DNA of 64,000 nt from Macrostomum lignano (Eukaryota): positions 136,150 through 200,149 of the forward strand of contig NIVC01002150.1 of assembly GCA_002269645.1 (NCBI GenBank), given 5' to 3'. This document shows positions 1 to 40,136 of the stretch, one piece after another; the first letter of the stretch is position 1; the number at the start of each line of letters is the position of its first letter. The notes below the pieces were generated by a model. That model did not search any database. It was not told the DNA's origin and saw only the letters and a list, made by a program, of their open reading frames with translations. The position numbers and the translations under genes are program-made.

Positions 1-766
1 AGGTTCAGGTTCAGATTCAGATGTCGGTATCAGGCTGTAAAACGGATAAAATGCCTAATTGGCATTAAGAGTAAAGGTGAAAGCAAGGACCATTGCTGTA
101 GAGTGGTCTACAACAGTGGTCCTTGGTGAAAGGCCTATGTAAACACAGGCCCTGTTGATTTTCACTTTCAATTGGGGCCAACACCGACATGCGTGACGAT
201 GAGAACTTAACGTTTAGCTTGTTATACAGTTATTGTTATTTAAATAGCCGAGATAAATAATAATTGCCTTAATAGTAGATTCCGGCTTTCCAAAGGATAT
301 GAGAAAAACGCATTTGATTTAATGTACTTCACGCGAAAGCAAATTTCAGACGAATTAAACTTCTTGTTTCGTAGAAAACTACAGATCTAATCATTTAATA
401 AAAAATGAATATCCGGACGTAGCTAAGCTAAGGTTGCTATGCTAAGGTGCAAGGTGTAACTAAGGTCGGAGGACTAAGGTCAACAGTTAGCAGTAGACTA
501 TATACTTAGACTACTCACGGTGGGTTCTAGTAAATTTCTTTGTAAATTGGTCAATCGATAATATCAATATGTAAGATCGAGGTCAAAGATGATGAATATA
601 GCATTGGGCCTCCAGCTTCAATTGATAGGAAAAGCTTTTTATAGGGAAACTAAAGCCGTTTGTATTCCAATGTTCAATTTCTCAATAAAGACTGCATTAC
701 TTTAGCATTTTTTCCAATAGCCATAAGCCATAGGCTAGCTAGCAATACTTATATTTAGTACTGTAT
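1..766. repeat. Interspersed repeat copy A (diverged duplicate of ~3543-4283; begins before the window)
   Basis: Collinear shared blocks, e.g. AGATTCAGATGTCG..CAGGCTGTAAAACGG, CCAACACCGACATGCGTGACGATGAGAACTTAA, CTTCTTGTTTCGTAGAAAACTACA, CGAGGTCAAAGATGATGAA, CCATAGGCTAGC. Confidence 0.85.
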
Positions 767-770
767 ATTA

Positions 771-1345
771 ATAGCCCTGTTCCCCCGTCCCCATCTTTCG
801 ACGGTCATCAATCGTCAGATCGATGACTGGGCTGACTCCCTCCACAGGGACAGATGGGCGGGCACCCAAAACTGCCGGCAATCTCGTGCCGCAGTTCCGT
901 GCCCCTCTCGCAGGCTCAGGAACGTCCTTCTGAACCAAAATCGGAAGGATATTTGAGCCCTTGTCATGACCTTTACCGGCCATGGCTACCTCGCCAGGCA
1001 CTGCTTCCTCCGAGGCGACCTCGATAGTGAGCATTGCCCCTTTTGCGAGTACGACAATGAAGTTGCTCAGCACTTTGTCACTTCCCTTTCTTTACCAGAG
1101 ACCGGCTACGCTACCTCGGGCCTAACCCGTCCATTGACGAGGTCTGCCAGCCCGACAGCATCTCACGGCTCATCCGGCTCCTCCAGGCGACTAGACGAGC
1201 CACTTTCTTCCCAACGGAAGATCACGCTGCAGGACGGACCGGCGGACCACCCTGACCCGGCGGACCACCTCTCTCTGCAGCTGGGGTCTCTGCCTGTCTG
1301 CGGGCCTTCAGGGACGGGAGTCTCCTGCATCAGTAGGCGCTAAAA
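771..1345 (+). mobile_element. Degenerate 3' fragment of an RNase H-type non-LTR retrotransposon (I group, Loa/R1-like)
   Basis: Manual translation ..INRQIDDWADSLHRDRW..NRKDI*ALVMTFTGHGYLARHCFLRGDLDSEHCPFCEYDNEVAQHFVT, then frameshift near 1083 to ..RDRLRYLGP..ISRLIRLLQATRR. The TGHG..CxxC..H C-terminal motif is typical of these LINEs. In-frame TGA at 954. Confidence 0.8.
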
Positions 1346-1563
1346 ATACACATGCATAACACGTGTTTCCATGCAGCAAGATGCGGCCAGTGCTTGACAG
1401 CCTATTATATAGCTGACTCAAGCTGCGTGTCTGAGAGACTGCCGAGAATGGGAACAGTGCAGCTGGGAAATGCGAATGAAATATCAGAAAGGATTTTGTT
1501 ATTACGTGTAGTACCTGCGATCTGCGACCCTCCCGGCCTGTGGATGAGACATTCGATGAGGCA

Positions 1564-2410
1564 ACAACAACAACAACAACAACAACAGAGTACGCTGCCA
1601 GATCACAAAAGCAGCGTCAGATGGCGCGCTTCAAAGCTTGGGCGCGAACAAAAGCCGCACCGCCGGCAGAGTCCGGGGCGCCGGCGTCAGCCAGCAGACA
1701 GTCGACGTAGCGCCGAGTCCTCGCCTGTCCCCGCCGGTAGGGTGCCTGCAACGTAAGTAGCAGCACCTCCTGCACCGGCTCCGGGCAGTAGGCCTCGGCG
1801 CGGATGACGTGGCCTGCCAGCTGGAGTCGCCGACGGCGCAGCAGATCGCTAGGACGGGCCAGGCCGGCGCGATGATAGAGCGCCGTGTTGGTGACTCGCT
1901 CGTTGCCGATCTTGAAGGCGGCGCGCAGCAGGCCAGCGTGCGCCGCGTCGACTTGAGCCTCGAGCGAGTCTGTCAGCGTCCAGGTCTCGGCGTTGTATAA
2001 CAGGACGGTCTCGATCACCGCCTGGAACAGCGCCGCCCTCTGGCGGTCCGGTAGGGCCTCGGACTGCAGGACTGACCTTATAGAACGAAAGGCAGCCCAA
2101 GCAAGTCCTCGGCGACGCCGCAGATCCTCGCGGACGTCGGGAACCAGACCGCCGAGGTAGACGAACTGCTGACATCTTGGAAGCTCACTCGCCTGTCCGT
2201 CAGCGCCTCGGCAGAAGATTGCAGCCTCGGTGTCGTCCGGCACGCATAGCACGACGGTCTTCTGCGTGTTGACCACCAGGCCGACGCTCGCCGCAACGGC
2301 AACCAGCCTATCCAGCTGTCGTTGGGCGCCCTCGACGGTCGAGGACAGCAGGGCGAGGTCATCGGCGTAGCCAAGCACGCTGAGCCGTCTCTCCGGTTGG
2401 CGTCGACCCA
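1564..2410 (-). mobile_element. 5'-truncated RTE-like non-LTR retrotransposon with intact RT C-terminus, (TTG)n tail and 10-bp TSD
   Basis: ORF 1617-2411 has LGYADDLALL, NTQKT, FVYLG and LLYNAETWTLT motifs. (CAA)8 tail at 1562-1585. Direct repeat CGATGAGGCA at 1554-1563 and 2411-2420. Confidence 0.92.
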
Positions 2411-2454
2411 CGATGAGGCATTATTACTTTATTCGGTAATATAGTTATTATATA

Positions 2455-2652
2455 TCATTTAACTTCATTTGAGTATTCGAAAGCTGCATTTGAGTTTTTC
2501 AAAAGCATCATTTGAGCTATTGGAACTCATCATTTGAGTACGAGCGTATTCGAAATCATCACTCGAGTTATTCGAAATCATCATTTGAGTTATTCGAAAG
2601 CATCATTTGAGTTATTCGAAAGCATCATTTGAGTATTCGGAATCATCATTTA
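2455..2652. repeat. Degenerate ~22-bp tandem repeat (ATCATTTGAGTTATTCGAAAGC)
   Basis: About 8 imperfect units read directly. Confidence 0.75.
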
Positions 2653-3542
2653 AATAATGTATGCATGTTACTTAATAAGTAATTATACATGTTAAGTATA
2701 TTTACAAGTTAAGTAATTATACATGTCTACTATATTTTCAAGGACTAATAGGAACTTTATAGTAGTCCTTGACTATATTATCTGCATGTACAAACGGCAC
2801 TGTATGAAGCATGTGTACGACCAGGACCACTGACAGAATTTAGTAGGCCCTGTGTGTACGCCTACATATTACAGTAGATACAAAATGTACATCCATCAGC
2901 CACTTATAAATGCAATAAATGCGATAATCCCAAAACTTCGAAAAGTCTCGTGGCCGCAAAAAGGCTCAGACTGCAGAGACACCAGTTGTTTCGTGGGCTG
3001 CATGCAATGCATCCAGTGTACTGGTAATTCTCCGGTAAAGGACGGTAAAAGTGCATCCGATATAAAAAATGATATAAAATAGCAACATTTTGAACTTCGC
3101 ATCTGGCCTCATTATGTCTGCACATGTCTGCCAACTTTATGTCAGCACACATATGCATACATACCCTTGTGTATGAATATTTTTCCTTAAAAAACATTTG
3201 TAAAAGCCTTCAGCTTAAGGTTTCCTTTTTCCATTGAATTTCAATATATCATTAGGCACAGAATTCAGTATATAGGCGAGGGCAGATGTCAGAGGGAGTA
3301 TAGCTAGTGCATAATTTTCTTAAGTGCATGACGTAAATGACCCGCAATACTATTTAAGAGCATACTGAGTACCGATGTAGTCATGAAAGTCTAACGACCC
3401 CATTTTCCTTGGCGCAGCTAGGAGCCAGGATGTGTGGGAGTTAAAAAATCTAGTGCTTTAAGCGATATGTGTTTGTGTTTAGCAAAGTCTTGTCTTTTTC
3501 TAGATGTCAGGTTTAGGTTCTTTATTTAGGTTTTTTAAGGGT

Positions 3543-4283
3543 TTAGGTTAAGATTCAGATGTCGATTTCAGGCTGTAAAACGGAAAAATCCCTAATTGGC
3601 ATTAAGAATAAAGGTAAAAGGCGCCCTGATTTTCACTTTTGGTTAACGCCAACACCGACATGCGTGACGATGAGAACTTAATTTTTATATCTTGTTATAT
3701 ATTTATTGTTATTTTGATAGCCAGGTTAAAAGATTTTTATTTCAATAGTGGCCTCCAACTTGCCAAAGGATATGAGAAAAATGCACTTGATTTAATGTAG
3801 TCCACGCGAAAGCAAATTTTAGACGAAATAAACTTCTTGTTTCGTAGAAAACTACAATAGTTGATAAAAGAGATAAAATATATTACGACGTAGCTTAGCA
3901 TGCTATGCTATGCTATTGCTAATTTGCTAAGGTCTAACTAAGGACTAAGGTCAACAGCCAGCAGTCAGCTAGGCATAACTCCGCGCCAAAACTATAATTC
4001 AATACTAGTAGGCTATATACTTAGACTAGTCACGGCGGGTTCGAGTAAATTTCTTTGTAAATCGGTCAATCGAGTTCGAGTAATATTGATATGTGAAAAT
4101 GTGAAATCGAGGTCAAAGATGATGAAGACATAGGGCTCCAACCCTAATTGGTGGGAAAAGCTATTTATAGCCTTATAGGGAAAACTAAACCCTTTTAAAT
4201 TCCAAAGGTCAATTTCTCAATAAAGTCTGTATTGCTTTAATTTTAGTATTTTTTCATATAACCATAGGCTAGCAATATCTATA
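3543..4283. repeat. Interspersed repeat copy B (duplicate of 1-766)
   Basis: Same collinear blocks as copy A, with many substitutions and indels. Confidence 0.85.
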
Positions 4284-5115
4284 ATCTAAATCTTCATCTT
4301 ATACCATACTATACTAGGCCCCTATGCCATACTTAGGGGTTGGACAAGATCTTGATCTTGATTGTCAAGATCTCAGTACTTTTCTTAATCTCAATCTTTT
4401 TTAAGATCTCTAAAAAACAAAAAGTCAAGATTTGTGACTATATGACTAGGCCTATTGGTGACTACAATATTATCATATTTATGTTTGATATAGGCCTACA
4501 TCTAGTTACCAACAAGCTCAATATTAAAAATTGTTTTTCCTTCTATTATGATCATTGTACATATTTATCAAATAACAATATTGTAACATTGTCAGTTGAG
4601 GTGCCCCAACAAGGGCCATTTTAGTGAAAGCAGTGCCATTCTATAATATTGTTAATTTGATGGTCTCATACACTAACATCTGCTTATAGTAATGCCCAAA
4701 GAATTTTAAACAACATTGCGTGACATTCGTAAAGCTTATGTATAATATGATCAATAATTTCTGTTTTCAAGTCGGTTTTCATTCTGGCCAATAGGAAAGC
4801 CATGCATAAATTATGCTAGCCTGAAATTAAGCTTTTGTTGCGCACCCACCCCCATCCCACTCGTTATCAGTTCTGTCTGGCTGGGGTGCCCGGGGTTAGG
4901 CTCTGTTTTCTCCTCTTCCTTCGCTTTGTACCTTTGCCTCCTGCCTTTCTTTCGTTCTCTCCTCTTTGCTCCGTCACAGTTCTAACCTACACCTCTGCCA
5001 AGTCTCAGTTGCGCCATTACCACTGCCAATTCTCAATCACGTCACCACTATTGTTTGTATGGGGTTCTTGCTACAAGTACTACCACTATACAATCACTGC
5101 CATTATATCATCACC

Positions 5116-5412
5116 CATACATGCGCAACCTCCAAATTACAAGTCGGCCGTGGGACTTAGTTTTAACAAAAATGCAACGTAGTTTTTGGCCAAAAATGCA
5201 ACTTACATATAAAAAAACCCAAAAGCAAAATTAATGCAACTTTGGGTAAACGGCAGGAGTAACTATGACTGTCTTATAAAGCCAAAATGCCTTGTCAGCT
5301 ACTTAGTACTACTACTTGGTGTTTTTTGGGTTGGCATTTTTGCGACTTCCTTGGTTGGCCGCCAAATCAGTCGGCCAGATCAGCCAACTCAGCCGACTGT
5401 TGCGCATGTATG
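5116..5412. mobile_element. 297-bp hAT-type MITE containing a 28S rRNA-derived segment
   Basis: Perfect 14-bp TIRs CATACATGCGCAAC (5116-5129) and GTTGCGCATGTATG (5399-5412). 8-bp TSD TCATCACC/TCATCGCC (7/8). Subterminal AAAATGCAAC/TGCGACTT motifs. Confidence 0.88.
5244..5307 (+). other. 28S rRNA-derived fragment (helix 69-71 region), not an rRNA gene
   Basis: GGGTAAACGGCAGGAGTAACTATGACTGTCTTATAAAGCCAAAATGCCTTGTCAGCTACTTAGT versus the conserved eukaryotic LSU sequence recalled as GGGTAAACGGCGGGAGTAACTATGACTCTCTTAAGGTAGCCAAATGCCTCGTCATCTAATTAGT. Confidence 0.88.
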
Positions 5413-8145
5413 TCATCGCCATTGCCTTAGGCTCATCAACTCGCTCTATCATCTATCTTATTGTTATGCAGCCACCTAGTGTATTCCTTACAGATTCAGC
5501 AAAATACTTAGGTCCATCTCTATTAACAACCTAGATGGAATTGATAACTAACAAGCCCTAACTATCTACTCATATGGATACAATAAAAGAATTGCAGCCA
5601 TTGCCTATATCATTCATCACTATCATTGAGTGCTACCACTACCAAATTTGCCTCTGTTGTATTCACCTTTGTCATTTGATCCAAAGTATGCCATTTAATT
5701 GTCACAATTAGCACTAATAGATAGAATAGTGTAAATAGGCCTACTAGATGCTAATTAAATTAGGCTTAATCTCAAATCTTAATTGAATCTCAATTGTCTT
5801 GAAAGCATAGATCTTGAGCCTCAAAAATCTCAAAATGTGATATTGTCTAACCCCTAACTATATTATATATTAATAGCTATACAGCTATTTAAAATTTAGT
5901 TTATTTAAGTCATTCAAACATTGATATGCCATGTTATTTGTAGCAGATTATATAAAATCAAAAAATGTGTTAAATAAAAAGTAGGCCCAGATCTTATAAT
6001 TAGTTTAAAAATCAAATATTACAATATATATAGTCCATATAATTATTACTTAAACTAATAGACATTTAATAACTTTATGGCCTATTCATAGGGCCTAGTA
6101 TTAGTGTTTTTGAGGTAGGGCAAAGAAATAGAGATTATTTTCTCGCTTGTGGCTTGGTTGGCTGATACCAAATTGGGGTGGTTCTAACTTTCAAATTGTC
6201 ACTGGCATTGAGCTCACACAAATTAAATCTGAAAAATTGTGCAGACAAATCCCAACAAAATTTCTCCTATAATACTCTGGCTGCCAGGGTCCTCAATTCT
6301 GGGGGAAGGGTAGTTTTGTTATTGGTAAGCAGTCTTCATTAGGCACAATTGTTCAGAGTTGGTCCTTAGACACCAAATTGGATGTAAATCAAATGCTTCA
6401 AATGCTTAAATGGTTACTATGAGTAGCCTAGTGCTGCCACCATTGTTATTTTCATATTATGGAACATTGAGGTCTCAGAGCTTTCTTTGAGATGAAACTT
6501 GGTTATTTTATGCCCCATGGGCAAATGACTCAAAATAGGCTATGGTTCTGATTAGTTAATTTGTGATTAAAGATTGTTTAATGTTTATTAATAGCACTGA
6601 GAACTAAGGAAAATATTAGCTAGATTAAACAAGGTGACTTATTAATATTATTTTGGCAACCTAACAATCAGATGATAGTTGGCAGTACCGCGGGTGCACT
6701 AATAGATGTTAAGCTAAAGTTATACACAAGCTAATAGACTCGATCAAGTTGTACTAATGGTTAAGTATTAATAATCAGTTAAAGTTATGAGAAAGGGAAG
6801 AGAAAGAAAAGGCAAGGTCAAGACAAGGTCAATGCTAGGGAGCATCATTAAATAGAACAAAAAGAGCAGAATGTGGACAAATAGGGACAAACACTAGAGA
6901 CAAAACATGGACACAAAAGACCAAACATGGAAATAGAATTTTGAAATTCAGTCAAACATAGAAAAACAAAAAATAACCAAATGGGGGATACACAAAACCA
7001 GGGAAAGGAGCAAGGAGGCCAAACCCAGGAAGCAAGAAAATGATGAAATTTTGCCATTAGGGGGCATCTTATGGTAGACAAAATGGGCCAACCCAGGTAA
7101 CAGAAAAAGGGGGGTCATAAGATGGTCTGGAAAATTAATTTCTTAGCAGAAATTTTCAGTGCATAGTAGTGCATATCAAAAGCTAACAACAAAATGAAAC
7201 ATCATGTATAGTACAGAATCAAATTGACATCAAGCTGACCAGTTGGAAGCAACCATCATATTTTTTACCAATTGCTAATTTTAACTCTCAAACTGAAAAG
7301 TGCATAATGCAGTAGAAAGTTTTAAATTAAAAAGCACTAATAAAAGCTAAAAAATTATGTTTTATTACTTTGATTTAGTCTAAATTTTACTAGATCTTCT
7401 AGTGCCACTGCATTTTTGCTATGAATTTGTCAATAACAAATATAGGGCTTGGTGTAGAACTTTGTACTTTAGCTTCATGCATAGCATATACCAAAAATAT
7501 ACTAAAATGTAGGCCTATTCCTGAATACACACAACACTTTCCTTCAGGGAGTATTGAGGCCTAGTAGCCAAAAAGTCCCAAAATCCTAATGTAGAAAGTA
7601 TATTAATCCTAGTAGTATAATCATGTATTGATTAGTTTTTACTTGTTTAAAATGAAAAATAGTTATAAAAGCCTAACCAATTACCAATTTCTCAGAGAAA
7701 TTATCAAGGTTCCATTTTCTAAATAAATTGCACCTCCCCTCTCCATCTCCTGTTTCCCTCCCTCTGTGTCTCTTGGCCTTCTCTCTATCTCCTTGTCTGT
7801 TTAACCACAATAATAATGGAAATTGGCATCCCAAAGAATGAACTACACAAAATATATCTCATATTTAAACATGAGCAATAAATATTTTCTCCATGATAAG
7901 CAATCTTAACATGCATAGAAACATTGTTATTCTATTATATTTGATAAAACAAACCTTTTTTGGTAAATAAAGCTCTCTTTTCATAGAAGTTAGAACAGTC
8001 TCTATAAAGTATAGATTAATTAAAAATTAAACATATTGTCATTATTGAAACTCTTGTTTTAATAACAATTTATCTAGAGTTCTGGATCTATAAAATACAA
8101 CAATTATTTATAAAATTAGATATCTTTTCTTATTAGTCTCTATAC

Positions 8146-22847: not shown

Positions 22848-23050
22848 GGGGGGGTTGTAGCCTAGTAGTTAGAGCGTCGGACTCATGACCTGAAGGTTGG
22901 GGGTTCGATTCCCGATCCCAGTTTTAACAATGTGTTATCTACAGCAAGACACTTAACGCTTCAGTTCGCCCAGCTGTAAAATGGGAGCCAGCATTAGCTG
23001 GGGTAATTGAGGCTGTGTGTGGCGACCTCCAGTCCTTGGACTGAACAGCC
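22848..23050 (+). mobile_element. tRNA-derived SINE with CORE-like central domain
   Basis: A-box-like TAGCCTAGTAG, anticodon-loop-like CTCATGA, B box GGTTCGATTCC, then GCAAGACACTTAAC..CAGCTGTAAAATGGG resembling the CORE/MIR domain. The acceptor stem does not pair, so it is not a tRNA gene. Confidence 0.75.
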
Positions 23051-23741
23051 GTCAGCTGGGAGTTCAACTGACATTATAGAGCATCGCGGTGTCAGCTGGG
23101 AGCTCAACTGATATTATAGAGCATCGCGGTGTCAGCTGGGAGCTCAACTGATATTATAGAGCATCGCGGTGTCAGCTGGGAGCTCAACTGATATTATAGA
23201 GCATCGCGGTGTCAGCTGGGAGCTCAACTGATATTATAGAGCATCGCGGTGTCAGCTGGGAGCTCAACTGATATTATAGAGCATCGCGGTGTCAGCTGGG
23301 AGCTCAACTGATATTATAGAGCATCGCGGTGTCAGCTGGGAGCTCAACTGATATTATAGAGCATCGCGGTGTCAGCTGGGAGCTCAACTGACATTATAGA
23401 GCATCGCGGTGTCAGCTGGGAGTTCAACTGACATTATAGAGCATCACAGTGTCAGCTGGGAGTTCAACTGACATTATAGAGCATCACGGTGTCAGCTGGT
23501 GAGTTCAACTGACATTATAGAGCATCACAGTGTCAGCTGGGAGTTCAACTGACATTATAGAGCATCGCGGTGTCAGTTGGGAGTTCAACTGACATTATAG
23601 AGCATCACGGTGTCAGCTGGTGAGTTCAACTGACATTATAGAGCATCGCGGTGTCAGCTGGGAGTTCAACTGACATTATAGAGCATCGCGGTGTGAGCTG
23701 GTGAGTTCAACTGACATTATAGAGCATCGCGGTGTGAGCTG
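23051..23741. repeat. 40-bp minisatellite (GTCAGCTGGGAGTTCAACTGACATTATAGAGCATCGCGGT), ~17 units
   Basis: Direct reading; units abut with no spacers. Confidence 0.97.
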
Positions 23742-30600: not shown

Positions 30601-33600
30601 CAAACTGAGCCAGAAAATTCTCAAAGTTGCACAGGAGCAGCTGGCCGAAACTCGCCTGTAAGTTCAGTAAATAAAACTTGCTAAAATCAATCACCTGTCT
30701 AGATAAAAGCATTTCATTTTTATTTAGTCCAGTAAATTATAACTTAATAAACCTTTCTATGGAAGAAATCTAATGTAGGTCCAAATGTAGAATTTATAAT
30801 GAAAGCTAAAATTGAGATATCAGTTTATCTGTTGAAACATCTTTCTTTCCTGGAAGATTAACCAAATAGTCGTACTTTTGAGTAGCAACAGCAGAGTTTG
30901 ATACTTCAAAAATTATATTCTACCATATGCACAGTTGTAGCTGTATTAGCAGTTTTTTTACTAGGCAGTGGCTTATTCTCACATATTTTTAACTGCCGTA
31001 GTCAGTCTATAATAGTTGTAGCCATGATTATTATGCATTAAATTAAGTTATTACTGTGAAACTAGGACTCTGGGTTTCATTCATCAAGAATGTAATGCAT
31101 ACATGCGCAACTTCTGAAATTACGCTGGCCGTGCGACTTAGTTTTCGATAAAAAATGCGACTTACCTATGAAAGAGCCAAGCAAAAACTTTAGGTAAACG
31201 GCAGGAGTAACTATGACTATATTTTTTAAAGCTAAATGCCTCGCCAGCTAATTAGTGCTGCGTGCAGATTCCGCGTTTTTATAACAGCTAATCAGTATGT
31301 CATCTAGTGGCGGCATGAAGCAATTAGTAAATTGTCAGTACAGTGTAGTGAGCATACTACAAAAGTCATGATTCATGAATGTCCAGAAGTAAGTGAAGTG
31401 AATACAGTGTTAGGCCCTACCTATAGCTCAAGAACGATTTGCTAGACGATTTGGCATGGAAGATGAGAGCCCTGATTCAGATGGCTCATCAGATGCAGAA
31501 TACGAATCCAGTAGAGATACAAGCTGTGAAAACCCACAGATTTTTAAACCACTGAATTCTAATTCCCAGAACTATTTTTGCATAGATTCTAAATTTGAAG
31601 TCATGCTCAAACAAAAACTTGTTAACAGTAAGGAAAAAGGCAAAGATGGGAGTAATGCATGTTAAACTAAGATTTGAGGCCTTTGCAAATTCTCTCCATT
31701 CCTCAATCTTCTCATCCTCTTTTTCTTTTCTCTCTCATCCCTTATCCCTTCTCTCTTTCCTCTCCTCTCTCCTCTCTTTCCTCTCCTCTCCTATCTCTTC
31801 TGTCTCCTCTCTACATTCTTATCTCTCCTCTCGTCTCTCTCCATTCCACTCTACTCTCTCATCTTATCTTCCCTCTCGTCTCTCTCCACTCTACTCTCTC
31901 ATTATCTCTCCTCTCTTTTCTACTCTCTCATCTCTCCTCTCTTCACTCTCCTCTCATCTCCTCTTTATCCTCTCTTCTCTCATCTACTCTCTCCTCTTTC
32001 CTCTTTCCTCTCTTCTGATCTTATCCATCATCTTTTCTTTCCTCTTTTCTCTCATCTCCTCTTCTCTCTCATCTCTTTTTCCTCCCTCAGCTTTTCTCTC
32101 CTCTTCTATCTTTTCTCCCATCGCATCGCTCGCCTCTCCTCTGTTTGCTTATCTCTAATCTTCTATTCCCTCTACTTTGAAGTAAGAAAATATGCACATA
32201 TTTTTGCTGAAGATAAGAGGAGAGAAGAGGGCATTGAGGAGAAAGGGTAGAGAGAAAGGGGGAGAAGAGAGGAGAGTAAAAATGAGAGGAGAGAGAAGAG
32301 GGAAAAGGGGGGAGAGAGAGAAGAGGGGAGGCAAGGTAGAGAAGAAGAGAGAGATGAGAGTTGAAGAGACACCAACCTTGCTACTCGAAGTTAGGAAGTT
32401 TCAAAGAACCCGAGGGGCGAGGGCCAGATAGAGGGGCTTCGCGAGCCGGAGTTTGCCAACCCCTGCTCCAGAGTTAAAGAAATGACGCGGGCTTCTGATT
32501 TCAAAGATCTTGTCTGTGGTTGAAGGCTTCTATTCTGTTTTTGCTCTCCTGCCACACTTGCACCTACTACCCCCTGATTGCCTCTGATTGTGACTTACTT
32601 CCCTCTTATTGCGACTTAGTTGCTTCTTTTTGCGACTTACCTAATCCTTTTTGCGACTTACTTAATCCTTTTTGCGACTTACCTAATCCTTTTGCGACTT
32701 ACCTAACCCGTTTGCGACTTACCTAATCCTTTTTGCGACTTACTTAATCCTTTTTGCGACTTACTTAATCCTTTTGCGACTTACCTAACCCTTTGCGACT
32801 TACCTAACCCTTTGTGACTTACCTAATCCTTTTGTGACTTACCTAATCCTTTTTGCGACTTACTTAATCCTTTTTGCGACTTACCTAATCCTTTTGCGAC
32901 TTACCTAACCCTTTTGCGACTTACCTAATCCTTTTTGCGACTTACCTAACCCTTTGTGACTTAGCTAATCCTTTTTGCGACTTACCTAACCCTTTGTGAC
33001 TTAGCTAATCCTTTTTGCGACTTACCTAACCCTTTGTGACTTACCTAATCCTTTTTGCGTCTTACCTAATCCTTTTTGCGACTTACTTAATCCTTTTTGC
33101 GACTTACCTAACCTTTTGCGACTTACCTAACCCTTTGTGACTTACCTAATCCTTTTTGCGACTTACCTAATCCCTTTTGCGACTTACCTAATCCTTTTTG
33201 CGACTTACTTAATCCTTTTGCGACTTACCTAACCCTTTGTGACTTACCTAATCCTTTTTGCGACTTACCTAATCCTTTTTGCGACTTACCTAATCCTTTT
33301 GCGACTTAGCTGATCCTTTTGCGACTTACCTAATCCTTTTTGCGACTTACCTAACCCTTTTGCGACTTAGCTGATCCTTTTGCGACTTACCTGATCCTTT
33401 TGCGACTTACCTAACCCTTTTGCGACTTACCTAACCCTTTTGCGACTTACCTAACCCTTTTGCGACTTAGCTGATCCTTTTGCGACTTACCTGATCCTTT
33501 TGCGACTTACCTGATTCTTTTTGCGACTTACCTAATCCTTTTTGCGACTTACCTAATCCTTTTTGCGACTTACCTAATCCTTTTTGCGACTTACCTAATC

Positions 33601-36600
33601 CTTTTTGGGACTTAACTAATCCTTTTTGGGACTTACCTAATCCTTTTTGCGACTTACCTAATCCTTTTTGCGACTTACCTAATCCTTTTTGGGACTTAAC
33701 TAATCCTTTTTGCGACTTACCTAACCCTTTTGCGACTTACCTGATTCCTGTTGCGACTTACCTGATCCTTTTTGCGACTTACCTGATCCTTTTTGCGACT
33801 TACCTGATTATTTTTACAACTTAGTTTGCTTCTTTTGCGAATTGTTTTTCTTTTGCTTCATTATTTTCCCTGAACTGCTCTTTCTTTCGCTTTCCTCTTG
33901 CCTTTCTTGGTTCTTGTGTTTTTGTGTTTTTGGTTGACTCAATTTTGCGACTTACCCCTGGTCAGCCACGATTTACGGTGGCCGAATCGGCCAGGTCGGC
34001 CAGCAGTTGCGCATGTATGATGTAATGTCAGCTGGCATAATATACAGAAATCAATAGGATTAATAACAGTGCCACTTTTCCATATTCCCTTGAAATGTAT
34101 AAGCAAAATTTAGCTTATTTAATTATATTATGTTTTAACTTTTTTCGTAGGTATTTTACACTGAAAAAATATTTTAGCGCCAGAACTAGATTTTAGCGCC
34201 TCAGTCTAGATTTTAGATAGGTTATAGGTATAGGTTAGATATATAGGTTAGGGTTAGAAAGTTGACAGATTTTTTTAGATTTCATGGCTTATGGGGAGCA
34301 TCGCTGAGATGTCAAGGGGGGAAGTTGATATGTTAAAGCTTGTGGGGGGGGAATAACTGACATGTCAAGGCTTACAAGGGACTGCTTTCAAAGCAGTATA
34401 TTAATGCAGAGATATTGCAAAGAGATGCTACATGTAGCTTATTACAAAACTTGTACTGCATTTTTTGGCTCCCCAACGCTAAGATACTAAGCTAAAAAAT
34501 ACTACTAGCGCTTCACAAACTTATGCAGATGTCAGGCTGTAGGGTTAGTGTTAGCGTTGGTGTTAGGGTATAGGGTTAGGGTTAGGGTTATAGCGTTAAG
34601 ATTCGGGTTAGTGCTAGGGTTAGGGTAGCTTATAACTTAGCTCATGTAGCTTATTAAAAATGTTTATCATAGAAGCGTCATGCAAAAATAATGGAAGCGT
34701 CATGTGAAAAATAATGGAAGAGTCATGCAAAAAATCATAGAAGCATCATGCAAAAACTCATGGACAAAAGATTAAATTTAGGGTTATGTTTAGGGTTAGG
34801 GTTAGGGCTATTAGAAGTTTTACAGGAGATTTTTTAAGATTTCAAGGCTACATGTAGCTTATTAAAAAACGTTTATTTCATTTCTTTAGCTCCCCAACGG
34901 GGGCGTAGATTGCTAGTGCTAGCTCTTAGCGCTACAGTCTAGATCTTAGCGCTACAGGCTAGATTTTAGCGCCATAGACTAGACTTTAGCCCCACAGGCT
35001 AGCTTTTTGTGTTTTTGCACCTAGGAGAGATCTTTATTCATTCCTAGGGGGTCTTTGACCACCTTGACCTCCCCTTGATAATCCCTCATTGAGGTTAATC
35101 CTTATTTGAGGGAGAGCAGTTGGGGAGGGAATTGAGAATTAAATATTCTCAATCAAGCCTGTTGTTAATTCTCAAACAACAACAGACAGCCGCAGTCTAA
35201 GCGAACCACAAAATCGGCGAGAGGCGGCGCATCAGCTTCGGCGAGAAAGTTCGCATCAACCGGTAGACGTCAGCGCGATGAAGCGGACAGCGACAGTGAG
35301 GACAGCGACGGCGAGGACGACGACAGTGAAGAAAGCGATAGCGACGGCGCACACAACGCCGATGAAGGCGATGCAGGCGAGGCCGTTGATGCCAGCGCCG
35401 AGCTGGCCAATCAGCTGTACACGGATGAGGGCGGCCCGCTCGGCCAGCTGGACGCCGAACAGCTGCGCTCGTTGATCGCCGAGAAGCGAACAGAAATTGA
35501 CGAAGAATTGGTGTCGGGCGTCGGCGGCGGCAGCGAGGCCGGTGCCAGCCGGGTCAGCAGCTGTTTGCCAGACTCGGTGCGGGAGCACTTCGAATCCTGC
35601 CGAGCTGTGCTCAGCCAGTACCGCAGCGGCAAGCTGCCCAAGCCTGTGAAACAGTTGCCGCATTTTTCTCAGTGGCAGGAACTGGTCGAACTGTTGGATC
35701 CAAACTCTTGGACTGCGGCGGCAATGTGTGCCGTTACTAAATACTTTGCCGCTAAAGGGAAGACGCAGGCTTTGCAATTCTTCCAGGTGAAAAATGAATA
35801 TTTTTCTTCGGATATATTGTACAAAGTCGTAGTGGCATTAGCTGTCTAATTGAATCGGTGTGCTTTTCTAATAGCAAGACAACGTTGACGGCAGGGAGAA
35901 GGGCGCAAAGACTGAAGAAAGAAAGGCGGGGGGAGACGAGAAAGGCAAGAGGAGGGAAGAGATATGTGAGAGGGAAGAGAATGGCGAGAGAAAAGAGAAA
36001 AGCGAGAGGGGGGAGAGAAAGGTGAGAATGAGAAGAGGAGGGCGAGGAAAAGTGAGAGGTGAAGAGAAAGGCGAGAAGGGGCGAAGAAAAGCGAGAGGAG
36101 GGCGAGGAAAAGGGAGGGTAGGGTGAGGAAAGGCGAGAGAAGGAGAGAAAGGTGACATGGGGCGAAGAAAGACGAGAAGAGAGTGAGGAAAGGCAATTGG
36201 AGGTAGAGAAATGCGAGTTGTGGCTGTAGCCGGGAAATGAGAAGTGACAGTATCAGATATGACAAACTGAGAAGAAAAATATAGAAAAGAATACAAAAGA
36301 TGTTTATCTTTTTACGTAGGGTAGCAGACTAGTCATTTTCACCATTGCTTTGTTAATATTAGTCTTATCGCACAGCCCCTGACCCTCTCGCGCAGGGCTA
36401 CTTGCTTCCCCGCTGTCGCGACGACATAGCCGAGTATAGGCGTCTTAACTTTCACTTGTACTCGGCGCTGCGCAAAGCACTGTTTAGGCAGCGGGAGTTT
36501 TTCTGCGGCTTACTGCTGCCCTGGGCTAGGGAGTCGATCTCCCTGCCGGAGGCTACGATCATTGGGGGCCTGTTGCGCCGGGTCAGCATCCCTGTAAAGT

Positions 36601-36968
36601 ACGCCGCCCCGGCCCTGCACATGCTGCTGCAGCTGCCGTACAGCGGCGGCCGGGCCATTCTAATCCGGGTGCTGCTGGAAAAGAAATATAACCTACCGGA
36701 TCCTGTGCTTGGCCAGGCTTTGGCTCATTTTGTTGCTATGGAAACAGATTCGGCCGATCACCTGAACGAGGACGGTCGGCTGCCGGTGCTTTGGCACCAG
36801 GCTCTGCTGGCGCTGGTTGAACGCTACGGCGACTACTTGAGCGGCGACGAGCGGCAGCGCCTGTTGCGGCTGTGCCGGCAGCACCAGCATCCGGAGATAA
36901 CGCCGGCTGTGCGACAGGCTCTCGGGGCGCTGCAACAGCGTGACGCCAGAATGGAGACTGCCGACTAG
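27671..36968 (+). CDS. BYSL: Bystin (Enp1), 40S biogenesis factor, 458 aa. Exons 27671-27805, 30590-30657, 35186-35786, 36396-36968
   Basis: Motifs SLADDI, YVDSKLSQKIL, VLSQYRSGKLPK, WTAAAM, LLPRCRDDIAEYRRLNFHLYSALRKALF, LLEKKYNLP, LPVLWHQALL, HQHPEITP. GT-AG junctions are phase-consistent (1377 nt). Confidence 0.96.
28485..29900 (-). mobile_element. Decayed hAT transposon with transposase remnant in bystin intron 1 (right boundary approximate)
   Basis: Minus-strand 28770-28950 reads IPPFQADDLTFLLEYKKAMAPVVRALDVFQGKQHCSLGTL/LPTI, matching the hAT FLxEY..ALDxxQGE..LLPT motif. Terminus CAATGATGGGCAC at 28485 with CGCTA/TAGCG subterminal repeats. Confidence 0.6.
31193..31257 (+). other. 28S rRNA-derived fragment, second copy
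   Basis: GGTAAACGGCAGGAGTAACTATGACTATATTTTTTAAAGCTAAATGCCTCGCCAGCTAATTAGTG; shares the GGCAGGAG variant with copy 1. Confidence 0.88.
32200..32465. mobile_element. Partial Charlie-like hAT MITE nested in the 2.9-kb element (left boundary approximate)
   Basis: End GTTTGCCAACCCCTG (32451-32465) followed by CTCCAGAG (NTCTAGAN-like). The reverse complement matches 46880-46930. AG-rich interior. Confidence 0.65.
32600..33830. repeat. ~20-21-bp minisatellite (TTTTGCGACTTACCTAATCC), roughly 55-60 units, inside the hAT element
   Basis: Direct reading; the core TGCGACTTA equals the subterminal motif of the hAT family. Confidence 0.95.
34160..35010. repeat. Internally duplicated repeat with interstitial TTAGGG-like tracts
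   Basis: TTAGGG-type runs at ~34220-34260, 34540-34626 and 34778-34808. Duplicated blocks GCTACATGTAGCTTATTA, GCTCCCCAACG and CTAGATTTTAGCGCC. Confidence 0.7.
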
Positions 36969-39561: not shown

Positions 39562-40136
39562 GTGGCGCAACTTGCGGGGTCGCTTCATAAGCTCGAAATT
39601 TCACAACCTCAAAAATTTTAGCAGCAGACTTCATAAGCTCGAAATTTCACAACCTCGAAAACCATTTTAGCAGCCGACTTCACAAGCTCGAAATATCACA
39701 ACCTCGAAAACCATTTTAGCAGCCGACTTCACAAGCTCGAAATATCACAACCTCGAAAACCATTTTAGCAGCCGACTTCACAAGCTCGAAATTTCACAAC
39801 CTCGAAAACCATTTTAGCAGCCGACTTCACAAGCTCGAAGTTTCACAACCTCGAAAACCATTTTAGCAGCCGACTTCACAAGCTCGGGGTTTCACAACCT
39901 CGAAAACCATTTTAGCAGCCGACTTCACAAGCTCGAAATTTCATATCCTCGAAACTGGGTTAAGCTCAGACAGACAAACAGACAGACACTAAAGACACTA
40001 AGATAGACAGTAAATTTTCGAGCTTGTGAAATTTCGAGCTTGTGAAGTCGGCTGCTAAAATGGTTTTCGAGGTTGTGAAATTTCGAGCTTGTGAAATTTC
40101 GAGCTTGTGAAAGCAACCCGCAACAACTTGCGCCAC
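39562..40136. mobile_element. Foldback-type element with long TIRs built of 49-bp subrepeats
   Basis: Left GTGGCGCAACTTGCGGGGTCGCTTCATAAGCTCGAAATTTCAC; the right end reverse-complements to GTGGCGCAAGTTGTTGCGGGTTGCTTTCACAAGCTCGAAATTTCAC. About 7 forward units on the left and 1-2 inverted units on the right, with a CAGA-rich spacer. Confidence 0.75.

Follow-up and report, generated by a model that had tools for sequence, protein, structure and literature searches.

Two copies of a cut-and-paste-type element in Macrostomum lignano share a fragment of 28S rRNA

How did a fragment of the 28S rRNA gene come to lie inside a transposon of the cut-and-paste type, and does it serve any purpose there? 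The question was raised by two repeats in the Mlig_3_7 assembly (GCA_002269645.1) of the free-living flatworm Macrostomum lignano (PMC5730564), both within the 64-kb stretch of DNA analysed here (the window). The original prediction for this locus described a family of hAT-type MITEs that had captured a piece of 28S rRNA before it amplified. Below, the anatomy of the two copies, the identity and age of the rRNA-like piece and the routes by which it may have arrived are considered in turn. The reading that we favour, at a probability of roughly 0.6, is that of a neutral passenger captured once, by template switching during gap repair, in a non-autonomous class II lineage, with the shorter copy as an internal-deletion derivative.

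Anatomy of the two copies

Four exact occurrences of the 14-mer CATACATGCGCAAC were present in the window and formed two inverted pairs (5116-5129/5399-5412 and 31098-31111/34006-34019); the chance expectation for matches with up to two mismatches was ~0.38 in the window. Each pair bounds one copy of the element and is enclosed by a target-site duplication (TSD). The predicted 8-bp TSDs were found in full for copy 2, where both sides read ATGTAATG (8/8), but with one mismatch for copy 1 (TCATCACC against TCATCGCC, 7/8). With four perfect 14-bp terminal inverted repeats (TIRs) and these duplications, both copies are non-autonomous elements of the cut-and-paste type, as had been proposed. The features of both are listed in Table 1.

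Table 1. Features of the two element copies (positions are those of the window)
Feature	Position	Strand	Remarks
Copy 1 left target-site duplication, TCATCACC	5108..5115	.	7/8 vs 5413-5420; read from sequence
Copy 1 5' terminal inverted repeat, CATACATGCGCAAC	5116..5129	+	exact 14-mer
Copy 1 5' subterminal region	5130..5243	+	aligns to copy 2 31112-31192, 76-84% identity
Copy 1 28S rRNA-like piece, H69 to H71, spans R2 target site	5244..5307	+	sense orientation
Copy 1 short filler TACTAC, then 3' subterminal region	5308..5398	+	homologous to copy 2 ~33905-34005, 78% column identity
Copy 1 3' terminal inverted repeat	5399..5412	-	exact 14-mer
Copy 1 right target-site duplication, TCATCGCC	5413..5420	.	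read from sequence
Copy 2 left target-site duplication, ATGTAATG	31090..31097	.	8/8 vs 34020-34027
Copy 2 5' terminal inverted repeat	31098..31111	+	exact 14-mer
Copy 2 5' subterminal region with GCTGGCCGTGCGACTTAG, AATGCGACTTAC	31112..31192	+	
Copy 2 28S rRNA-like piece	31193..31262	+	reaches slightly further 3' than copy 1 piece
Copy 2 non-coding interior	31263..32604	+	ORFs low-complexity only
Copy 2 tandem array, ~60 units of 20/21 bp (CTTTTTGCGACTTACCTAATC)	32605..33823	+	period 21, 59.7 copies, 89% matches
Copy 2 3' subterminal region, TGCGACTTA and repeated (T/C)GGCCG motifs	33824..34005	+	
Copy 2 3' terminal inverted repeat	34006..34019	-	exact 14-mer
Copy 2 right target-site duplication, ATGTAATG	34020..34027	.	

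Copy 1 was 297 bp long (5116-5412) and had no ORF of its own. Its 5' subterminal region contained a GTCGGCCG motif and four degenerate copies of (A)ATGC(G/A)ACTTA, which are presumed to be transposase-binding sites. The copy consisted of the 5' ~160 nt of a copy-2-like element, the filler TACTAC and the 3' ~110 nt, and the left breakpoint of its deletion coincided with the 3' edge of the 28S piece. Built in this way from copy-2-like ends and filler, copy 1 is an internal-deletion derivative. Ends joined through filler are the usual structure of such derivatives when they result from interrupted gap repair after excision, as in Ac/Ds and P elements.

Copy 2 was far longer at 2,922 bp (31098-34019) and non-coding. 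Within its interior, a CT-rich arm (~31700-32140) and a GA-rich arm (~32200-32370) gave rise to a long hairpin (32043-32277), and each unit of the tandem array that follows contained the subterminal motif TGCGACTTA. No transposase remnant was found in copy 2, whose ORFs were low-complexity translations of the hairpin and the tandem array, and exact-protein look-ups for the ORFs inside it matched no record. MITEs are by description under about 800 bp in size. The predicted term thus suits copy 1, with its TIRs, TSD and lack of an ORF, but not copy 2, which is a larger relative.

The copy 2 array is itself a minisatellite that arose within a transposon, from the element's own TGCGACTTA motif. 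The window had 81 rows of tandem repeats, and many of its other minisatellites may have a similar transposon origin. Two long hairpins, the one in copy 2 and another at 39916-40053 made by inverted 49-bp repeat arrays, gave weak Rfam scores against plant MIR precursor models; these are foldback structures, not miRNA genes.

The two copies shared more than their TIRs. At both ends, (T/C)GGCCG motifs adjoined the TIRs on the inner side and TGCGACTTA occurred as well, and the alignment of copy 1 to copy 2 gave an identity of 84% over positions 1-49, 76% over positions 58-195 and 71-78% over the last ~95 nt. All four TIRs were perfect and the TSDs nearly so, whereas the adjacent sequence differed by 16-29%, which suggests that the divergence mostly predates insertion and arose between active sub-lineages. 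No further copy or fragment of the element was found within the 64 kb, and the words family and amplification, where they are applied to this element, refer to two copies only, both within the window.

Identity and age of the 28S-like piece

The piece was compared to the 84-bp 28S duplex of the R2 target printed in a structural paper on R2 (PMC12180492). Copy 1 (5244-5307) aligned to reference positions 8-71 with 55/65 identical columns, and copy 2 (31193-31262) to positions 9-77 with 56/70 identical columns, at blastn E values, calculated within the window, of 4e-9 and 2.5e-7, respectively. Blastn gave no other significant 28S match in the 64 kb. Both pieces, 64-70 nt in length, were 80-85% identical to helices 69-71 (H69-H71) of eukaryotic 28S rRNA, the comparison being with published eukaryotic 28S. 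A decayed continuation of the copy 2 piece to ~31275 is possible. Smith-Waterman scores against a longer 28S stretch were 77 for copy 1 and 72 for copy 2, compared to 18 ± 2.3 for shuffled elements (z ~26). The piece is homologous to 28S rRNA in both copies and occupies homologous positions in their alignment, which upholds the central claim of the original prediction, ~65 nt of H69-H71 at the same place in each.

The structure of the rRNA has been lost. The Rfam model LSU_rRNA_eukarya placed both copies on the same model positions, 2255-2310 (H69-H71), a span that comprises the H69 hairpin, the single-stranded stretch with the R2 site and the H71 hairpin. The scores were weak, at 11.5 and 13.2 bits (E 2.4 and 0.73), and fell far short of the gathering threshold, since a covariance model penalises the broken pairs; the LSU matches of both copies were not recovered in the Rfam scan of the whole window. 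Two of the six H69 pairs were non-canonical in each copy, as were two H71 pairs in each. In RNA folding, the real 28S piece formed both hairpins at −17.8 kcal/mol, whereas the element copies formed neither and folded no better than shuffles (z ~ +0.8). The piece is a relic of 28S in its sequence and does not mimic the rRNA structure, in agreement with the earlier view that it is no folded rRNA mimic.

The cargo of the two copies has a single origin. The piece began 128 nt from the 5' end in copy 1 and 95 nt in copy 2, a difference due to indels in the subterminal region, and was preceded in both by the same non-rDNA junction, AACTTT(G/A)GGTAAACGG. Relative to 28S, both copies also carried the derived changes GCGGG>GCAGG, CATC>CAGC and AAGGTAGC>AAAGC, along with a common 2-3-nt deletion. 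The common junction and the common derived changes indicate a single acquisition in a common ancestor and support the view that one capture preceded the divergence of the copies.

Early capture had been predicted from the first of these changes alone. This G>A (GGCGGG>GGCAGG) is indeed present in both copies, and a capture before their split stands, but the change is weaker testimony to it than the junction and the other changes. It is a CpG>CpA change, and genuine LSU rRNAs among the metagenome loci recovered in a scan described below (L020, L021, L045, L059, L062, L072, L074 and others) read GGCAGGAG...CTCTTTTAAGG, so that the usual G-C at the base of H69 is replaced by a compensated A-U pair. 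The G>A is a natural polymorphism across eukaryotes. Since it lies at a CpG and the same base is natural in many genuine LSU rRNAs, it is the weakest of the capture markers.

Within the piece, the two copies were identical at 57/68 positions, close to the identity of each copy to 28S, as predicted by neutral drift from an ancestor that was nearly identical to 28S. The longest exact match between the copies, longer even than the TIR, was 26 nt and comprised the first 26 nt of the piece. This run is a possible hint of constraint but not a significant one, with a p of ~0.1-0.2 by our own estimate at a background identity of 78-80%.

Class of the element and route of capture

Consensus hAT elements have TIRs that begin 5'-YARNG and TSDs of the form nTnnnnAn, and the autonomous members encode a transposase with a BED finger, a DDE core and a hAT dimerisation domain. 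The elements described here share with non-autonomous hAT and P elements and MITEs the 8-bp TSD, short 14-bp TIRs, repeated subterminal motifs and internal minisatellite expansion. A TIR of 14 bp falls within the short-TIR range of hAT (about 10-25 bp). The terminus CATAC does not match that of hAT: against YARNG, Y1 and A2 fit, while R3 and G5 do not. Of the TSDs, TCATCACC and ATGTAATG misfit nTnnnnAn at position 7 and one fits at position 2, a comparison that involves two sites only. Pfam detected no transposase domain among 66 ORFs of the window. Duplications of 8 bp are not exclusive to hAT and also occur in P, some MULE, Merlin, Zisupton and Novosib elements. The P superfamily has 7-8-bp TSDs, short TIRs beginning with CA and a THAP-domain transposase, and the 8-bp TSD and CAT... 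terminus of the element are compatible with it. The hAT-type assignment of the original prediction, which was drawn from the 8-bp TSD and the short TIR, therefore did not hold as a result: judged by its TSD and TIR length, the element may be of hAT type, a reasonable prior, or equally of P type.

Whichever its class, we infer that a transposase supplied in trans would recognise the 14-bp TIRs together with the subterminal (T/C)GGCCG and TGCGACTTA motifs, and that a target cut with an 8-bp stagger would produce the 8-bp duplication. In a single event, the ancestor of both copies would have gained ~70-90 nt of 28S rDNA at a point ~100 nt in from its 5' end, most likely by a template switch to the highly repeated rDNA during repair of an excision gap, that is, as filler DNA or by transduplication; neither copy holds a trace diagnostic of the mechanism. 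Afterwards, the piece would have been a passive passenger that drifted to 80-85% identity, lost its H69 and H71 pairing and was inherited by diverging sub-lineages, and copy 1 would have formed by a later internal deletion of a copy-2-like element. The 28S piece is most likely biologically neutral.

Arrival of the piece by way of RNA is unlikely. A 28S fragment, or a 28S leader or co-transcript associated with R2, would have been reverse-transcribed by a LINE or R2 enzyme into the ancestor. The R2 target site lies at the centre of the captured stretch, whose extent is almost that of the 84-bp R2 target duplex; metagenome loci L001, L007 and L048 join 28S pieces that start at about the same position (AAACGGC...) to non-rDNA; and 28S-derived retroposons such as SINE28 are known (PMC10946416). 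However, 28S is uninterrupted at the R2 site, where no retroelement sequence separates the two halves, and neither copy has a poly(A) or short flanking duplications around the piece.

An ancestral copy that sat in or near the 28S hotspot might instead have taken flanking rDNA along by aberrant transposition in which a site in the flank served as a surrogate end. For rDNA-specific mobile elements, this part of 28S is known to be a hotspot (R2 and, at TTAA, Pokey), and the 3' TIR (5399-5412 and 34006-34019), GTTGCGCATGTATG, matches 28S at 11/14 positions in GACGCGCATGAATG, which directly follows the captured stretch. That likeness was read from the sequence post hoc, with a p of ~0.01-0.02 locally by our own estimate, and is probably due to chance, though it could hint at an rDNA-related element end. 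Such an event is improbable. The piece is internal, ~100 nt from the 5' end and, in copy 2, ~2.7 kb from the 3' end; beyond the decayed equivalent of GACGCGCATG, copy 2 continues into unrelated sequence and not into an element end; and the two copies are surrounded by non-rDNA and have TSDs that are unrelated.

Just as improbable is that the 28S module was kept for a use to the element or host, whether in factor binding, as a leader of the transposase transcript or in giving rise to small RNAs that could pair with 28S. Elsewhere the copies are 76-84% identical, but over the first 26 nt of the piece they do not differ, and this stretch is one base off 28S, so antisense small RNAs could conceivably pair with rRNA. 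Yet a run of this length is statistically unremarkable, each copy has its own scrambling in the centre of the piece, the rRNA structure has disappeared, and the deletion in copy 1 clipped the 3' end of the piece. The suggestions of the original prediction that the element might yield rRNA-targeting small RNAs or seed ectopic pairing with rDNA are thus speculative. In a fuller form, an H69-H71 module with the whole R2 target region would have been retained in an active transposon lineage for production of piRNA or siRNA able to pair with 28S or rDNA, for titration of an rRNA-binding or modification factor or as ectopic landing sites for rDNA-specific elements, which we consider very doubtful. 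Were functional retention true, transposon control would be tied to ribosome biology through a cut-and-paste element.

That the 28S similarity is fortuitous or stems from an assembly chimera is effectively refuted already: the Rfam covariance scores, far below the gathering threshold and absent from the whole-window scan, speak for it, but the E values of 4e-9 and 2.5e-7 and the z of ~26 speak against coincidence, and two independent, diverged loci 26 kb apart, each inside an intact TIR/TSD element, do not bear the signature of a misassembly.

Known systems, related sequences and surroundings

DNA transposons such as Pack-MULEs, Pack-CACTA and Pack-hAT are well known to capture fragments of their hosts; what is simply unusual here is a coding fragment of 28S as the cargo. 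Like Pack-type transposons and Ds-like derivatives, it is a non-autonomous TIR and TSD element with an interior piece of a host gene and a deletion of the gap-repair type, and the host-gene-derived fragment between its ends is common to both copies. Unlike them, its cargo comes from an rRNA gene and not a protein-coding gene, its host is a flatworm and it is known from two copies.

A 2024 review of the interplay between rDNA and transposable elements, which also discusses modular acquisition, covers as rDNA-derived modules 5S-derived SINEs, Cassandra and Ajax TRIMs and the 28S-derived SINE28, and among DNA transposons with such modules lists only Pokey/mPok, which have IGS-derived repeats (PMC10946416). 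Our literature searches returned this general review only, with no DNA transposon that has 28S cargo, and the TIR string appeared in no paper. The novelty that had been claimed is roughly upheld for this exact cargo: the review lists no DNA transposon with a 28S-coding fragment, but capture of host sequence, rDNA included, is in general well known.

Pokey and mPok (piggyBac, Daphnia) are comparable as a DNA transposon and MITEs with rDNA-derived sequence, and the Pokey site lies in the same 28S hotspot. In contrast to the present element, Pokey carries IGS-derived repeats of ~200 bp and not 28S coding sequence, and inserts at TTAA in 28S, while the copies described here have unrelated 8-bp TSDs and both lie outside rDNA. 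With non-rDNA flanks, different TSDs and no other rRNA-like sequence in the window, the copies are not rDNA-specific insertions of the Pokey or R2 type. SINE28 of mammals, 5S-derived SINEs and Cassandra TRIMs are likewise repeats through which part of an rRNA gene has been dispersed across the genome. Those are retroposons without TIRs that move through RNA, and in the 5S cases the piece is a Pol III promoter, whereas the present element has TIRs and a fixed 8-bp TSD and its piece is without a known promoter role. The hallmarks of rRNA-derived SINEs were thus lacking; TIRs were perfect, the TSD was of fixed 8-bp length and a tail was absent.

Few rDNA-derived modules are on record in transposons, and the element contributes a cut-and-paste case; a single capture provides a dated marker for tracing a transposon lineage in Macrostomum. 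If the family were abundant, there would be hundreds or thousands of 28S-like tags across the M. lignano genome, which may confuse rDNA annotation, FISH probes, rRNA depletion and read filtering. The element would gain biological interest only through conservation of the piece from copy to copy or through an input of the piece into small-RNA pathways.

Relatives of the element were sought in other datasets. A metagenome scan with the element 21-mer AACGGCAGGAGTAACTATGAC returned 102 loci, with the TIR in 0/102, and these were rejected as family members; they were genuine LSU rRNAs, R2-type junctions, a 28S-derived satellite and a few short 28S leaders. In scans of viral contigs, an element 25-mer and the array unit each gave 0 matches and the TIR with GGCCG gave 5, all of them chance matches to a single TIR and likewise rejected. 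The array unit gave 0 matches in a scan of prokaryote genomes. A protein search with the translated 21-bp array produced three weak matches (E 2.9e-10 to 6.4e-4), which were taken as unrelated repeat proteins.

Several of the metagenome loci are of interest in their own right. In metagenome Ga0209788, two loci (L064, 1-1319, and L077, 1-1216) consisted of a ~130-bp tandem satellite. Each unit held the same H69-H71 piece of 28S (CAACGGCGGGAGTAACTATGACT...AATGCCTCGTCATC), which indicates that this stretch escaped from rDNA independently elsewhere. At ~1575-1610 of L001, and in the same form in L007 and L048, there was a 29-nt 28S leader, AAACGGCAGGAGTAACTATGACTCTCTTA, with non-rDNA on both sides; L006, L013, L025, L031, L046, L067 and L070 were also listed with L001 as loci with 28S leaders or junctions. 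In many other metagenome loci, 28S was broken off right after CTCTTAAGG, and these breaks are taken to be R2-type insertion junctions in diverse eukaryotes.

The window also encoded a single-exon VWA-domain protein and exons of Bystin; no homeologue was found for the VWA gene cluster. The annotated gene model of Bystin, of 458 aa, has its start upstream of 33805, and copy 2 lay at its 5' end. A model with three exons (31646-32146, 35484-35786 and 36396-36968) gave exactly 458 aa, and its exon 1 was the CT-rich ORF inside copy 2, with a GC donor. In this gene model the transposon may contribute a first exon, probably artefactual, to Bystin, a ribosome-biogenesis gene. Just downstream of copy 2 was an interstitial telomere-like array, (TAGGGT)14 at 34540-34626, which is TTAGGG in another register.

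Two further sequences were observed upstream. A tRNA-like sequence at 22851-22920 passed the Rfam gathering score (36.1 bits) and was not called by ARAGORN; it adjoins a minisatellite of 40 bp x 17 (23051-23741) and may be a tRNA-derived repeat. At the start of the window, a degenerate reverse-transcriptase ORF (1620-2420, minus strand) was enclosed by direct repeats, 2-83/3540-3620 at 90% and 156-728/3627-4269 at 72%, and the whole of 1-4269 looks like an old retroelement of the LTR type. JGI and ENA metagenome proteins were up to 92% identical to this reverse transcriptase, pointing to Macrostomum-like DNA in environmental datasets.
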